From the IMG/VR virus record IMGVR_UViG_3300032307_000369, positions 62,001 to 126,000 of that record: 64,000 nt of DNA; one strand, written 5' to 3'. Of this stretch, positions 3,650 to 42,148 are shown piece by piece. Both the position numbers and the translations under genes were made by a program. The notes below the pieces were generated by a model. That model ran no database searches and had not been told where the DNA came from. It saw only the letters and a list, made by a program, of their open reading frames with translations. The stretch's first letter is position 1; the number at the start of each line of letters is the position of its first letter.

Positions 3650-3678
3650 TTGACAACCAACAACTCTGACTGTATAAT
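3650..3678 (+). promoter_or_regulatory. sigma70-type early promoter
   Basis: TTGACA-N17-TATAAT, intergenic; AAGGAG SD downstream. Confidence 0.85.
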
Positions 3679-8376: not shown

Positions 8377-8716
8377 GCATATTAAAACAGACAAAATTAA
8401 AAAACAAACTACTTATTGGCTTTGGTTTGGACGAGTAAGTCCAATACTATTTCTTATTGGATCTTTTTCATTATTTGAAATTTTCAACACCGAAGTACCA
8501 TTCATTTTCTATTCCAGTTGGATAGTTTTCGTTACAGTATCATTAATTTGGTGGGCATGGGTACTTAGGACCATTTTAGAGTTTATTAAATTTTTTCAAG
8601 AAGTCAGTCTCTCTGTTGAAGATATAAAAGACAATATAAAAGAAGTTCAACAGAGCGTAACAACTTTGAGAGATTTTGAGATAGAAATAAACAAAAAGAT
8701 TGACAATCCTAAATAA
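8369..8716 (+). CDS. 2-TM membrane protein with coiled-coil tail
   Basis: two hydrophobic helices. Confidence 0.6.
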   Translation: MNRHIKTDKIKKQTTYWLWFGRVSPILFLIGSFSLFEIFNTEVPFIFYSSWIVFVTVSLIWWAWVLRTILEFIKFFQEVSLSVEDIKDNIKEVQQSVTTLRDFEIEINKKIDNPK

Positions 8717-8727
8717 TAATGTATAAT
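8700..8727 (+). promoter_or_regulatory. sigma70-type promoter with nested TAAATA
   Basis: TTGACA-N16-TATAAT; TAAATA at 8710. Confidence 0.7.
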
Positions 8728-8731
8728 TAAT

Positions 8732-8777
8732 ACATGCGGCCTTAGGCATTCATCCCGCAATATAAATTCTGCATGTC
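8732..8777 (+). ncRNA. candidate structured cis-regulatory leader of queD
   Basis: GC-rich island; tgcgg/ccgca stem, loop ggcat pairs with atgtc after an A-rich linker. Confidence 0.4.
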
Positions 8778-8800
8778 ATTGTTCATAAAGGAAAACAACA

Positions 8801-9340
8801 ATGGCAAAATATCTTTCAACAAAAACATACGGCAATGATCGTGGACTTTCATGCTGTTTCAGACAGTGGCGTAGCACACATAGTCACTGCTCATTACTAC
8901 ACGGATATTCAATTGGTATTAAATTAATTTTTGAATCCGAGACACTAGATGATCGTAACTGGGTTATGGATTTTGGTGGACTAAAAGCATTCAAAGAGTG
9001 GAGCGAATACATGTTTGATCATACTTTGGTGCTTGGTGTTGATGATCCACATTTAGAAAAATTTAAAACACTTGCGGCACTTGGTCTTAATGATGTGGGC
9101 GGAGTTTGCGACATTCGTATCGTAGAAGCTGTAGGCTGTGAAAAATTTGCTGAATTGGCTTACAAAACTATGCAAGACATTTTGGAAACTTTCCAAAAGG
9201 GCGAAGGTTGGGAACTAAAAGACCAGTCTGGCAAAACATTAAAGTTGTTCGGTGCTCGTTATCCAGTTGGCGCAGGTGTTAAATTGCGTTCAGTAGAAGT
9301 TTTTGAACACGCCGGTAACAGTGCTGTTTATGAAGGATAA
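8801..9340 (+). CDS. queD: 6-carboxytetrahydropterin synthase / PTPS family
   Basis: HCSLLHGY, WVMDFGGLK, FDH, GCE, VEVFE. Confidence 0.85.
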   Translation: MAKYLSTKTYGNDRGLSCCFRQWRSTHSHCSLLHGYSIGIKLIFESETLDDRNWVMDFGGLKAFKEWSEYMFDHTLVLGVDDPHLEKFKTLAALGLNDVGGVCDIRIVEAVGCEKFAELAYKTMQDILETFQKGEGWELKDQSGKTLKLFGARYPVGAGVKLRSVEVFEHAGNSAVYEG

Positions 9341-9346
9341 ACTTTC

Positions 9347-9676
9347 ATGAAACATAGTATCTGCGACATTGGCGGTGTCGTAGTTAAGGATAACGAAACT
9401 TATGTCCTTAAAGACAACACCTTTCTTAAAAACTTAATTTTAAGTTCAACAGACTTAAAACCTAAACAAAGCACTCGCGGTCACAAACATCCTGGACAAG
9501 AAGAAGTTTATTATTTTGTCAACGGGAGCGGTATAATGGAATTAGACAACGAAAAGATACCAGTTTGTCCAGGGGACGTTATACTAATCAAAGATGGAGT
9601 ATTCCATAGAGTACATAACACAGAAGAAGAAAATCTTTATTTCGTTTGTGTATTTGACGGGAAGAGAAATCATTAA
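9347..9676 (+). CDS. cupin-domain protein
   Basis: HKH..QEEVY...G.G ... PGDVILI..GVFHRVHN. Confidence 0.85.
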   Translation: MKHSICDIGGVVVKDNETYVLKDNTFLKNLILSSTDLKPKQSTRGHKHPGQEEVYYFVNGSGIMELDNEKIPVCPGDVILIKDGVFHRVHNTEEENLYFVCVFDGKRNH

Positions 9677-9876: not shown

Positions 9877-9905
9877 TTGACATTCAAGGGCATAGATGTT
9901 ATTAT
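9877..9905 (+). promoter_or_regulatory. sigma70-type promoter
   Basis: TTGACA-N17-TATTAT. Confidence 0.65.
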
Positions 9906-9933
9906 AACACTATGTCCTTTTTTATTGGTTATT

Positions 9934-10950
9934 ATGATTAAACGTATAGGTTTCGCATGTAAGTGGATTGATCGCCCTGATCAAGTAGATGGTATCAAGC
10001 CAACCGACGATTGTAAGCAATATAACACTGGCGCTACCACCATTACTTGGTTAAATAAACAAACAAAAGAAGTTGCTGAACAAAAACTATGGGACCTAAT
10101 GGTCCAAAACTTAGAAGCAACACGATTACTTGTTGAAAGGGTAGGCAAACAACATGAAAGACTCCGCATGGTTCGCCTTAGTAGCGACATTCTTCCTGCT
10201 TATACCCAATCTGATTGGAGTTATTTTTGGAGTAAACCTGACGTTGTTGAGTATCTTGAACGCAATTTCATCCTTATTGGTGATAGTGCTCGTGCAAGCA
10301 ATACCCGTGTTTCTATGCATCCTGGTCAGTTTACTGTTCTTGCTAGTGATAATCCGGACATTGTTCGGAGAAGTATAGAGGAGTTTGAATATCATGCAGA
10401 TATGGTCAGGTACATGGGCTACGGTAAACAATTTCAAGACTTTAAAATTAATGTCCACATCTCGGGTAGAGCCGGTCCCGAAGGTATTCGAGCTGCCTAC
10501 AAAAAACTTTCCCCTGAAGCAAGAAATTGCATCACAATTGAAAACGAGGAAATGAGCCATGGGTTATCTACTTGCTTGTCTCTTGGTGATCTTCTTCCTA
10601 TCGTACTTGATATACATCATCACTGGATTAAAGAAGGTGAATACATCATGCCAAATGACCCAAAAGTACAGCAAGTACTTGACAGTTGGCGTGGTCTTCG
10701 CCCTACTATGCACTATAGTATTAGCAGGGAAGATGTGCTTGTTGATCACTGCACTCTAACTAAACCCAATCACGAAGCTCTTTTAGAGTCCGGATACAAA
10801 AAACAAAAACTTAGGGCACACAGTAACTTCTATTGGAATAAGGAAGTTAATGATTGGGCATTGAGTTTTAATGATCAATTTGATATCATGTGCGAGAGCA
10901 AGGCTAAAAATTTAGCCAGCAAAGCTCTTTTTGATTATTCCAATACATGA
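9934..10950 (+). CDS. uvsE: UV damage endonuclease
   Basis: RIGFAC, RLSSD, SMHPGQF.VL.S, INVH, IENEE, LDIHHH, HYS, RAHS, MCESKAK. Confidence 0.92.
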   Translation: MIKRIGFACKWIDRPDQVDGIKPTDDCKQYNTGATTITWLNKQTKEVAEQKLWDLMVQNLEATRLLVERVGKQHERLRMVRLSSDILPAYTQSDWSYFWSKPDVVEYLERNFILIGDSARASNTRVSMHPGQFTVLASDNPDIVRRSIEEFEYHADMVRYMGYGKQFQDFKINVHISGRAGPEGIRAAYKKLSPEARNCITIENEEMSHGLSTCLSLGDLLPIVLDIHHHWIKEGEYIMPNDPKVQQVLDSWRGLRPTMHYSISREDVLVDHCTLTKPNHEALLESGYKKQKLRAHSNFYWNKEVNDWALSFNDQFDIMCESKAKNLASKALFDYSNT

Positions 10951-11425: not shown

Positions 11426-11472
11426 AATGAATGTGGGCCACGAACTACAATAACAATAAGGTTCAATTAGTT

Positions 11473-12198
11473 ATGTTAAAAATTACAAATCTCTCCGTCA
11501 ATTACGACGTTATTCCAATTTTGGAAGATATCAATTTAGAAATCAACGAAGGCGAAATTCACGCTATTCTAGGACCAACAGGATCTGGAAAAAGTTCCTT
11601 GGCAAGTACAATAGCTGGTAAAACAGACCTCAGTGTTGTTAAAGGAAAAATAAACTTTAAAAGAAAATCTTTGAACAGTTTAAATCCAAATGAAAGAAGT
11701 AAGTTAGGAATTTTTACAACCTTTCAAGAACCTCCTGAAATTAATGGGATCACAAATTTAAATTTAACCAGACAAATTTTAAATGCTCGTAATGACAAAA
11801 GATCATCAACTGACATTATTAATGATTACAAAAGTTTAATAAAACAATTTGATCTAGGAAGCGAATGGTCCAATCGAGATTATAACGTAGGAGCAAGTGC
11901 AGGCGAAAAAAAGAAAAATGAAATTGTACAGTTACACATGCTCAATCCATCTCTTACAATTTTAGACGATATTGACAGTGGTTTAGACTTAGACACACTA
12001 ACCGAAGTATTTAAAAGTTTAAAAACTTTCCTATCACAAAAAGGAAAGGCAGCTATCATTATCACACATCAACCAACGATCCTTGAAGCAATCGAGCCCA
12101 CCCATGTGCATGTTATCATAGATGGAAGAATCGTAGAGTCAGGTGATAAGAAACTAATTAAAAGGATCATTTCAAATGGCTATCGAGAGTTTTCTTAA
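11473..12198 (+). CDS. sufC: SufC-like ABC ATPase (divergent)
   Basis: GEIHAILGPTGSGKSS, FQ.P.EI.G, S.GEKK.NEI.Q, ILDDIDSGLD, IITH. Confidence 0.85.
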   Translation: MLKITNLSVNYDVIPILEDINLEINEGEIHAILGPTGSGKSSLASTIAGKTDLSVVKGKINFKRKSLNSLNPNERSKLGIFTTFQEPPEINGITNLNLTRQILNARNDKRSSTDIINDYKSLIKQFDLGSEWSNRDYNVGASAGEKKKNEIVQLHMLNPSLTILDDIDSGLDLDTLTEVFKSLKTFLSQKGKAAIIITHQPTILEAIEPTHVHVIIDGRIVESGDKKLIKRIISNGYREFS

Positions 12199-13000
12199 AG
12201 TTGATTCACAAGACCCAGATTGGTCAAACAGTCCCACTCAGTACTTTGGTAAAAAATTTAAGGTCATTGATGCAAATTGCTTAATGATAAAAGAAAATAC
12301 TGATGACTTAATGGTTCTACGTATGAACCCAACTGAGTCAGATTTGCTGTGTAAAAATTTGCAAGTTCTTGGAAAAGATAGTAGTAGATTAGATTTGTTT
12401 ATTTTATGTGACGGATCTAAAAATACTCAACAGGTTTTTATTTACAATGTAACTGCTGAGCCAGATTCAATTATTAATATTGGAATTTTTGTTAAGGACG
12501 GAAAACTTAATAAGCATATTTTTGAATGTGAACTTTATGAGAATTCTGTTATTAACATTTTTGGTCTTGCAGAAAACGAAGTTGGTGGCAGTAGTGAAAT
12601 CATAAGCAAAGTTTACCATGCAGGTCCTTGTGCAGAGAGCAACACATTTGTAAACAGTATTGCTGGAAAAAATAGTCGAACTGTTTTTCAAGGCATTGTC
12701 AAAATTGAAGAAGACATGATAGACAGTGTTGCCAGTGTAACTAACACTAGTATTACATGTGATGAAACTGCCCAAGCATTTAGTACTCCGCAAATGATAA
12801 TTGATTGTGGACAAGTGAGAGCATATCATAACTGTGAAGTCAACACTGTTGACGAAAATAACATATGGTATTTAGAAAGCAGGGGAATTGATAGAAGTAG
12901 TGCTGAAACTCTATTAAAAACGTTGCATCAAGATAGTGTGTTGGACCTTGTTGAATATCAAGACATTAGAGATGAACTCAAAGATTTTTTCCAAAGTTAA
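12176..13000 (+). CDS. sufD: SufD/SufB-family beta-helix protein
   Basis: VFQG.VKI, S.PQM.I, AYH, WYLESRGI...A..L. Confidence 0.75.
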   Translation: MAIESFLKVDSQDPDWSNSPTQYFGKKFKVIDANCLMIKENTDDLMVLRMNPTESDLLCKNLQVLGKDSSRLDLFILCDGSKNTQQVFIYNVTAEPDSIINIGIFVKDGKLNKHIFECELYENSVINIFGLAENEVGGSSEIISKVYHAGPCAESNTFVNSIAGKNSRTVFQGIVKIEEDMIDSVASVTNTSITCDETAQAFSTPQMIIDCGQVRAYHNCEVNTVDENNIWYLESRGIDRSSAETLLKTLHQDSVLDLVEYQDIRDELKDFFQS

Positions 13001-14120
13001 AAGCGATTTTACTTTACCAGACAAAACATACTTAAACAGTGCATCACAAACTTTAATTCCTAATCAAGTAAAAAATTCCTACCTTGATATTTGTAATAAA
13101 ATTGATGCAAGGAAAGAGTATGAAAATGTTAGACAAAAAGTAAAACTACTAATTAATTCTAAAAAAGATAATGAAGTAGTTTTTACTCAAGGCAACAATC
13201 ATAGCATTAATATGATTGCCAAAAGTATTTGTCATAAATGGCATTCAAATGATTGTGTAATTGTTCCTGAAAGTGAGCATCATGCCAATTTACTCATTTG
13301 GCAATACATGTCAATTGAATACGGTTTTAGATTTGAAACTGTAAATGTTATCAAAGACGGCAGCATGGATCTTGGTCATCTTGAAGACTTGCTAGACAGT
13401 TGTGATGGTAAAATATTGTTCAGCATGAGTCACATATCCAACAGCATTGGATATGTACAGCCTGTTAAGAGTATTTTTGACAAGGTTAAAGAGTATGACG
13501 GAATAACTCTACTAGATGCAAGTTTGAGCATTGGTAGAGAATTGATAGATGTGCAAGAGTTTAATATTGATTTTCTAACATTTACTGGTCATAAATTTTA
13601 TGGTCCAACTGGTGTTGGTATATTATATGGCAAGCAAAAATATTTAGACAAGTTAGAGCCTACTATATTAGGCGACAGTAATAGCACATTATTACCATGG
13701 AAATTAGAAATTGGTAAACCTAATATTGCAAGTGTAGTTATGTTAGGTTCAGCAATTGATTGGTTTACATCATATGATTTAGAAAGTTTTCATACCTACG
13801 ATAAACTTATGAATGCAAATTTTCAAATGATGTTAAATGAATTAGACTTTGTAGAAATATTTCATCCTGGTTATTATAAGGGAGGATTAATTGGATTTAA
13901 TCTACATGGACACCATCCTGCGTATGTGGGTGAATTTTTGTCTAATGAAGGTATTGTATTAAAATATGGACATTTGAATGCAAGACCTATTGTAGAAGAA
14001 AAGTTCCCAAATGGTATACTTAGATTAAGTTGGGCCTGCTATAATACTAAAGAAGACGTTGAACAATTAAGGCAAGGACTTATAAAATTCTACGATAAAT
14101 ATAGTTCTAAAAGGACATAA
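12972..14120 (+). CDS. sufS: SufS-like class V PLP enzyme lacking the catalytic Cys
   Basis: EHHAN..WQ, HISN.IG, TGHKFYGPTGVG, R.S...YNT; GHLNA in place of GHHCA. Confidence 0.85.
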   Translation: MNSKIFSKVKSDFTLPDKTYLNSASQTLIPNQVKNSYLDICNKIDARKEYENVRQKVKLLINSKKDNEVVFTQGNNHSINMIAKSICHKWHSNDCVIVPESEHHANLLIWQYMSIEYGFRFETVNVIKDGSMDLGHLEDLLDSCDGKILFSMSHISNSIGYVQPVKSIFDKVKEYDGITLLDASLSIGRELIDVQEFNIDFLTFTGHKFYGPTGVGILYGKQKYLDKLEPTILGDSNSTLLPWKLEIGKPNIASVVMLGSAIDWFTSYDLESFHTYDKLMNANFQMMLNELDFVEIFHPGYYKGGLIGFNLHGHHPAYVGEFLSNEGIVLKYGHLNARPIVEEKFPNGILRLSWACYNTKEDVEQLRQGLIKFYDKYSSKRT

Positions 14121-32030: not shown

Positions 32031-32263
32031 TGCATCCATTACAAGTAAATCTTGAAAATCTAACTGACAGTGAGTTAGAAGATAAAATAAAAGAGCTAAC
32101 CAAAAAGTACTTTGTAGTACTACAGGTTAGCCCTTCAGCATCAACGCAAGTATTGATGTTATTAGAAGATTACAAAAGCGAACAATCAGCAAGAGAACAC
32201 AAACGACAAAACCACAAATCAGATCTAGGCGATGAATTTGATGGTTTGATTAATATTGGTTGA
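32030..32263 (+). CDS. hypothetical protein
   Basis: TAATG coupling. Confidence 0.6.
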   Translation: MHPLQVNLENLTDSELEDKIKELTKKYFVVLQVSPSASTQVLMLLEDYKSEQSAREHKRQNHKSDLGDEFDGLINIG

Positions 32264-32287
32264 CATTTTTGTAAATTCATATATAAT
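32260..32287 (+). promoter_or_regulatory. sigma70-type promoter (leaderless geometry)
   Basis: TTGACA-N16-TATAAT, ATG 6 nt downstream. Confidence 0.7.
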
Positions 32288-42110: not shown

Positions 42111-42148
42111 AAAGGCAGCTTGACAGTTGCCTTTCTTTGTTATATAAT
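42111..42148 (+). terminator. intrinsic terminator overlapping a sigma70 promoter
   Basis: aaaggcagc-TTGACA-gttgccttt plus T-rich tail; TTGACA-N17-TATAAT. Confidence 0.75.

Follow-up and report, generated by a model that had tools for sequence, protein, structure and literature searches.

We show that the 5′ leader of a queD-like gene in a freshwater jumbo phage is a conserved RNA pseudoknot, which is built like a preQ1-I riboswitch but falls outside every Rfam family, which was found almost only on phage contigs and which appears to be wired to switch translation on. Over 96 distinct homologous leaders 90.9% of the cells in the two pseudoknot helices P1 and P2 are paired, 9 of 12 pairs show compensatory changes and 0 of 500 shuffles reach these values. 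A downstream hairpin, P3, shares 2-7 nt with the 3′ strand of P2 and buries the start codon or the Shine-Dalgarno (SD) sequence, suggesting that P2 and P3 constitute the alternative states of a putative riboswitch.

Locus and architecture of the leader

The window analysed here is a stretch of 64,000 nucleotides comprising bases 62001-126000 of a 245,550-bp IMG/VR virus record (G000) with about 37% GC and an estimated completeness of 70%, i.e. a jumbo phage from freshwater-type samples. All positions refer to the window unless stated otherwise, and homologous loci are designated by L and a number. The leader lies between a 119-aa ORF that ends at 8716 and a 179-aa ORF at 8801-9340 (only translation table 11 was used). 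It contains the following features:

8700-8727 (+), predicted sigma-70-type promoter: TTGACA (8700-8705), 16-nt spacer with TG just upstream of the -10 hexamer, TATAAT (8722-8727)
8735-8739 (+), P1 5′ strand (UGCGG)
8740-8744 (+), L1 (CCUUA)
8745-8752 (+), P2 5′ strand (GGCAU-U-CA): five distal pairs, then U8750 of a U.C mismatch, then two proximal pairs
8753-8754 (+), L2 (UC)
8755-8759 (+), P1 3′ strand (CCGCA)
8760-8769 (+), L3 (AUAUAAAUUC), with A at positions 3, 5 and 7
8770-8777 (+), P2 3′ strand (UG-C-AUGUC), the proposed switching sequence, containing the mismatch partner C8772
8774-8783 (+), P3 5′ strand (UGUCAUUGUU), overlapping the P2 3′ strand by 4 nt
8788-8792 (+), SD sequence (AAGGA) in the 13-nt loop of P3
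8797-8806 (+), P3 3′ strand (AACAAUGGCA), containing the start codon (8801-8803) and codon 2
8801-9340 (+), QueD-like PTPS-family gene (179 aa), inferred to be the regulated gene
9347-9676 (+), cupin gene (Pfam Cupin_2), 6 nt downstream and probably in the same operon

The promoter matches the consensus at 12 of 12 positions, which is the best match in a 12-kb scan, and places the inferred transcription start at about 8734, 1 nt before P1. In many relatives the TGTATAAT box sits exactly 7 nt before P1. Four RNA-labelled sequencing runs hold only contigs of relatives whose coverage begins where conservation begins, so that these do not map a start site. The window contains five perfect TTGACA-N15-18-TATAAT sites on the + strand (344-372, 3650-3678, 8700-8727, 32260-32287 and 42120-42148) compared to 0.12 expected, suggesting that the phage relies on host sigma-70 consensus promoters. 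The stretch 9877-10950 holds a UvdE UV-damage endonuclease gene with its own near-consensus promoter at 9877-9905.

The 179-aa protein belongs to the PTPS/QueD family (Pfam PF01242, 5e-13; phrog_2389 'QueD-like', 6e-33) but scores only 36 bits with the NCBIfam QueD equivalog model, which has a cut-off of 89 bits.

Comparative analysis of the pseudoknot

The initial annotation had described a stem formed by TGCGG (8735-39) and CCGCA (8755-59), a pairing of the loop GGCAT (8745-49) with ATGTC (8773-77), and an alternative pairing of ACATGCGG (8732-39) with CTGCATGT (8769-76). This observation is correct, as all of these pairings are present in the sequence. The window sequence alone is not informative: its minimum free energy (MFE) of -12 kcal/mol equals the shuffle mean (z = -0.01), 94 of 200 shuffles fold as well, and the MFE structure uses the alternative helix. 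We applied the comparative test that had been proposed with the annotation, i.e. covariation among homologous leaders.

A protein-guided search identified 80 loci encoding QueD-like proteins with 74-100% identity to that of the window. Of these, 73 carry the same leader element, 72 directly upstream of the gene and one (L035) ahead of a paralog, resulting in 49 distinct leaders. In a structure-blind MAFFT alignment P1 is 99.6% paired, with compensatory changes at two of its five pairs, and the loop-tail helix is 78% paired although part of the loop is misaligned; 0 of 500 shuffles reach the observed values. The loop and the tail gain or lose one base pair together in the same 15 rows of two independent MAFFT alignments. 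In contrast, the alternative helix is only 66% paired, its four outer pairs are mostly unpaired and its covariation is not clearly above shuffles (31/500), so that this particular alternative is not conserved. A narrower version, according to which CUGC pairs with the P1 5′ strand GNGG, fits 82% of cells but fails in 9 of 12 GAGG sequences and is better explained by the UG:CA extension of P2 described below.

The variants show that P2 extends beyond the five annotated pairs. These are followed by a U8750.C8772 mismatch, which is invariant in 96 of 96 distinct aptamers, and by two further pairs, C8751:G8771 and A8752:U8770. The proximal pairs change to A:U in the L074 clade and to G:C in L247 and L267, which explains the otherwise puzzling invariant CUGC. 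Searching for the longest loop-tail helix picked wrong registers in one platform group, whereas anchoring the register on the mismatch requires no gaps and results in 86% pairing at positions 1-5 with four to six pair types each; shifted registers give 25-47% and whole-strand shuffles reach at most 64%. In a covariance-model alignment of the 96 aptamers fitted to P1 only, the whole knot is 90.9% paired, nine of 12 pairs show double changes in 135 cells, 0 of 500 shuffles reach this and slid controls give 30-49%. Across the alignments P1 is 98-99.6% paired, with AU76/UA12 and CG46/UA27/AU23 at the two covarying pairs, and P1 together with the loop-tail pairing is 88-91% paired. As the sequences are related, some of these counts reflect only a few evolutionary events, and the L2-L3 pairs rest on about three clades.

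The loops are conserved as well. L1 varies from 3 to 9 nt among relatives, but its second and third bases, C and U, are invariant. The closing pair G8739:C8755 is invariant in 96 of 96 aptamers, and C8754, directly 5′ of the P1 3′ strand, is conserved in 95 of 96 (L259 has U). L3 position 4 is a pyrimidine in 31 of 31 leaders with a C:G middle P1 pair and A in 22 of 22 with A:U or U:A, i.e. it tracks this pair in 53 of 53 leaders, and position 6 is U in 9 of 9 with U:A. This suggests a base triple. In a short variant of the RNA (L263 328-370, and L258), scoring only 20 bits with our covariance model, P1 is reduced to 4 bp and L3 is 3 nt shorter. These are signatures of an L3 strand lying in the P1 groove, although the number of independent events behind them is small.

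Distribution and gene association

A covariance model carrying P1 only identified a single copy of the element in the phage, with no further copy upstream of folE or of the QueE-like gene. An IUPAC pattern scan returned at least 120 instances in IMG/VR, and the element has hundreds of copies there. As the pattern fixes some bases, variation at those positions was judged from the protein-guided sets only. Of the 119 instances that could be assessed, 118 precede a QueD-like gene or an operon containing one after a cupin gene (L206) or after a 243-aa ORF (L221), while one (L191) is a chance match. The element was never found before queC, queE, queF or a transporter gene. In L206 the cupin (minus strand; 2531-2872 on the reverse complement), with 55% identity, lies directly behind the RNA and ahead of the QueD-like gene, suggesting a two-enzyme unit under the putative switch.

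The association holds for three QueD-like subfamilies, with 179 aa (window 8801-9340), 168 aa (L035 2495-3001) and 195 aa (L127 415-999). The third is 27% identical to the window protein and carries the RNA in 28 of 40 loci retrieved by protein alone. All three have CxxxHGY in place of the CxxxHGH motif of QueD, as in E. coli QueD, and the first two also have RQW where QueD has its first zinc histidine, suggesting that their chemistry may differ from that of canonical QueD. In L030 and L064, relatives without the RNA, the QueD-like gene is directly followed by a QueE-like gene, which hints that the RNA marks a particular gene arrangement.

Among genomes of 185,579 prokaryote species the pattern gave 22 matches, of which only seven are true instances, all on contigs of metagenome-assembled genomes (MAGs). 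Six have a QueD-like gene directly behind the RNA and the seventh (L109) is cut by the contig end at the start codon. The bins holding the RNA (L102, L105, L109, L114 and L119) are mostly labelled Bacteroidota, one being a 183-kb 'Haliscomenobacter' contig, yet their leaders use strong SD sequences and -35/-10 promoters; these are probably phage contigs binned with cellular genomes.

The tie of the RNA to one protein family across three subfamilies would also be compatible with a protein-binding site, at which the QueD-like enzyme itself or a phage translational regulator decides between P2 and P3, as in the autoregulatory leader pseudoknot of T4 gene 32. We consider this unlikely, as the invariant single-stranded bases, the mismatch and the base-triple-like covariation are concentrated in a compact 43-nt knot as in small-molecule aptamers, the RNA stays nearly constant while the QueD-like proteins diverge to 27% identity, and no RNA-binding domain is evident in the protein.

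Expression platform

No terminator follows the element, as there is no U-tract after any helix. In every leader type the sequence beginning inside the P2 3′ strand forms a predicted hairpin, P3, with the ribosome-binding region, with energies of -5 to -12.6 kcal/mol. In the window UGUCAUUGUU pairs with AACAAUGGCA, placing the start codon in the stem and the SD in the loop (MFE of -9.0 kcal/mol for 8773-8815); relatives carry AGGAG at the position of the SD. Other groups use GUCAUC with GAUGGC plus an imperfect extension over the SD, or CCUAUG with CAUAGG over the SD itself. Of 148 distinct leaders, 142 have a tail-to-RBS helix of at least 5 bp, and 127 of these overlap the P2 3′ strand by at least 2 nt. 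The base of P3 is 89% paired in 49 leaders, with G:C changing to A:U and C:G to U:A, and 0 of 500 shuffles reach this. P2 and P3 are mutually exclusive, and only these two partners of the tail are conserved.

The clearest evidence is that the loop strand of P2 is a copy of the start region and that both change together: GGCA occurs with AUGGCA (Ala), GGUA with AUGGUA (Val), GACUU with AUGACUU (Thr) and GACA with AUGACA, the tail in each case being complementary to both. Where P3 pairs with the SD instead, codon 2 is free to vary. Blocking the P2 3′ strand in silico weakens the platform structure by a mean of 4.4 kcal/mol. In the window the energy changes from -9.0 to -0.8 kcal/mol and the unpaired probability of the AUG rises from 0.00 to 0.31 (about 0.3-0.5 in the window type), while the SD-pairing type shows mixed changes in accessibility.

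As P3 is AU-rich and of modest stability it could melt with temperature, and the structure starts at the predicted 5′ end of the mRNA, which might suggest an RNA thermometer, a fixed translational throttle or a 5′ stabiliser of the mRNA. Such a ligand-independent function is very unlikely, as a throttle or thermometer needs only P3 and does not explain a conserved pseudoknot with invariant loop bases, a U.C mismatch, a loop strand mimicking the start region and the exclusive linkage to one enzyme family.

Comparison with known RNA families

The preQ1-I model of Rfam (RF00522, gathering threshold 39 bits) gave no match at E<=10 in window 8600-8900, L074 or L004, and no Rfam family matched at gathering threshold in the window or in 20 loci. 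A scan of the whole phage with RF00522 gave a best hit of 13.7 bits elsewhere and nothing at the leader. A preQ1-II (RF01054) hit of 15.4 bits in L074 (gathering score 47, E=2.7) is driven by the SD region, no preQ1-III (RF02680) hit was obtained, and a freshwater-2 (RF02980) hit of 14 bits (gathering score 49.9, E=9.9) appears in the window only and in none of 20 relatives. Both weak hits are at chance level.

With preQ1-I (types I, II and III) the element shares an H-type pseudoknot of similar size at the start of a que-type mRNA, here that of a QueD-like protein below the QueD cut-off, a 5-bp P1 closed by G-C as pocket floor, a C directly 5′ of the P1 3′ strand at the position of the specificity base, preceded by U, A or C (type I has UC, types II and III have AC), an A-containing L3 that tracks P1, and a P2 3′ strand as the presumed regulatory strand (PMC11625349). 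It differs in that P2 has 7-10 pairs with an invariant internal U.C mismatch instead of 3-4 pairs, L2 is 2 nt, the first L1 base is C, A or U followed by an invariant CU instead of U or UU, L3 ends in an invariant YUC instead of A, and the SD is not part of P2 but lies 10-30 nt downstream in or next to P3, which competes with P2, whereas P2 of preQ1-I contains part of the SD or precedes a terminator. The positions equivalent to U6, the first L1 base, and to A29/A30, at the 3′ end of the A-rich L3, which contact the ligand edge in preQ1-I, are not conserved as U and A, i.e. two of the three ligand-contact positions differ. The element was found only on phage contigs and phage-like MAG contigs. 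We therefore do not file it as preQ1-I but describe it as a preQ1-I-like variant.

SAM-II and SAM-V riboswitches are likewise H-type pseudoknots in which L3 lies in a helix groove and forms base triples, they act as translational switches, and SAM-V was found in marine metagenomes; however, there is no sequence resemblance and no Rfam match, they are associated with methionine/SAM genes and they are OFF switches. The Vibrio vulnificus add adenine riboswitch shares the proposed logic, as a strand of its aptamer helix is also the 5′ strand of an RBS-sequestering helix so that ligand binding frees the RBS, but it has an unrelated three-way junction fold, a different size and a different gene context. 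The T4 gene 32 leader is an H-type pseudoknot at the 5′ end of a phage mRNA controlling translation, but it binds its own protein product and not a metabolite, and is not known to have conserved pocket-like loops or a competing RBS hairpin of this kind.

Discussion

Our data support a model according to which the leader (about 8734-8806) is a riboswitch consisting of an H-type pseudoknot aptamer, with a P1 of 5 bp, a P2 of seven pairs interrupted by the U.C mismatch, a 2-nt L2 ending in the conserved C and an L3 lying along P1, and of the hairpin P3 as expression platform. Without ligand the tail would pair with the start region and translation of the queD-like gene would be low. In known H-type pseudoknot riboswitches the ligand stabilises the knot; here this would hold the tail in P2, collapse P3 and allow the ribosome to bind, resulting in a translational ON switch. 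The helices P1, P2 and P3, their overlap and the exclusive association with QueD-like genes are established by the comparative data, and the conserved aptamer with covariation, the mutually exclusive platform pairing and the consistent gene association correspond to what is expected of a riboswitch, whereas ligand binding, the identity of the ligand, an effect on expression and the direction of the switch are inferred. We favor this model with moderate confidence. The ligand is most likely a small molecule with a guanine-like Watson-Crick face from the GTP to pterin to 7-deazaguanine route, as inferred from the gene association and the conserved C, and an ON design fits a precursor or a signal better than the end product.

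The interpretation given in the initial annotation, a variant or new riboswitch-like sensor of a 7-deazaguanine or pterin pathway metabolite with mutually exclusive pairings, is thereby supported in part: the element is a conserved, riboswitch-like H-type pseudoknot that resembles preQ1-I without matching its consensus, and it does have mutually exclusive pairings, but the conserved competitor of P2 is P3 and not the proposed helix, and the ligand class remains an inference.

All known preQ1 riboswitches are OFF switches (PMC11625349), and feedback control of a biosynthetic enzyme would normally need an OFF switch. The same aptamer might act as a classical OFF switch for preQ0, preQ1 or CDG, with the ligand-bound knot, stacked on the remaining part of P3 or lying close to the SD, blocking the ribosome. 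The shared fold, closing pair and conserved C, the que-pathway-type gene and the presence of FolE and a QueE-like gene in the phage are in agreement with this. In the marine variant L107 the SD starts only 5 nt after P2, so direct occlusion is possible there, and a preQ1-I riboswitch separated from its RBS is reported to regulate translation all the same, with steric blocking by the liganded knot argued as the mode of action (PMC10018353). However, P2 and P3 share 2-7 nt in 127 of 148 leaders and cannot both be complete, P3 buries the AUG or the SD and loses most of its stability when P2 forms, no third, anti-sequestering element was found, the U6 and A30 equivalents are not conserved and RF00522 does not match. 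The OFF reading is not excluded but we consider it unlikely.

A further-reaching possibility, which on present evidence is doubtful, is a riboswitch class confined to phages that has re-used the preQ1-I fold with a rebuilt pocket (the U.C mismatch, the L1 motif nCU and an L3 ending in YUC) to sense a ligand other than preQ1, for example the QueD substrate 7,8-dihydroneopterin triphosphate, another pterin or 7-carboxy-7-deazaguanine, thereby switching on translation of a divergent QueD-like enzyme during infection.

Riboswitches are reported to be rare in phages, and the cases discussed, glutamine riboswitches and one putative psbA-associated riboswitch (PMC9004378), are classes also known from bacteria. 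No Rfam 15 family covers the element described here, and our literature searches revealed no description of it. It shows the smallest known riboswitch fold rebuilt with a longer, mismatched P2 and apparently inverted logic, and it would offer a compact natural ON switch (about 75 nt) for engineering. It also provides an experimental handle on the role of FolE, QueD-like and QueE-like genes in jumbo phages in which Pfam searches found no QueC or DpdA, as the ligand of the RNA should name the metabolite the phage monitors.

The phage encodes FolE (G000 129260-130006) and a QueE-like radical-SAM enzyme (G000 132836-133789; phrog_2076, 4.5e-58), while Pfam searches found no QueC and no TGT/DpdA either here or in a relative that is 99% complete. 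Both genes lie in a cluster outside the window (G000 129260-133789; L240 3260-7789), about 58 kb downstream of the queD-like gene, together with a cysteine-dioxygenase-like and a phosphoribosyltransferase-like gene, none of which has the RNA in front. Within the window (11431-14120) the phage encodes a SufC-like ABC ATPase, a SufB/D core protein and a class-V aminotransferase (SufS-like), and the phage and its relatives carry many radical-SAM genes, which suggests phage-supplied Fe-S cluster assembly. In relatives (L004 3689-4534, L005 3616-4098, L036 2337-2723 and L023 5161-6138) the locus is flanked by a KdsA-type DAHP-synthase-family enzyme, a cytidylyltransferase, a HIT protein, glycosyltransferases and a GDP-mannose-dehydratase-type epimerase, i.e. 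a sugar-nucleotide module of auxiliary genes.
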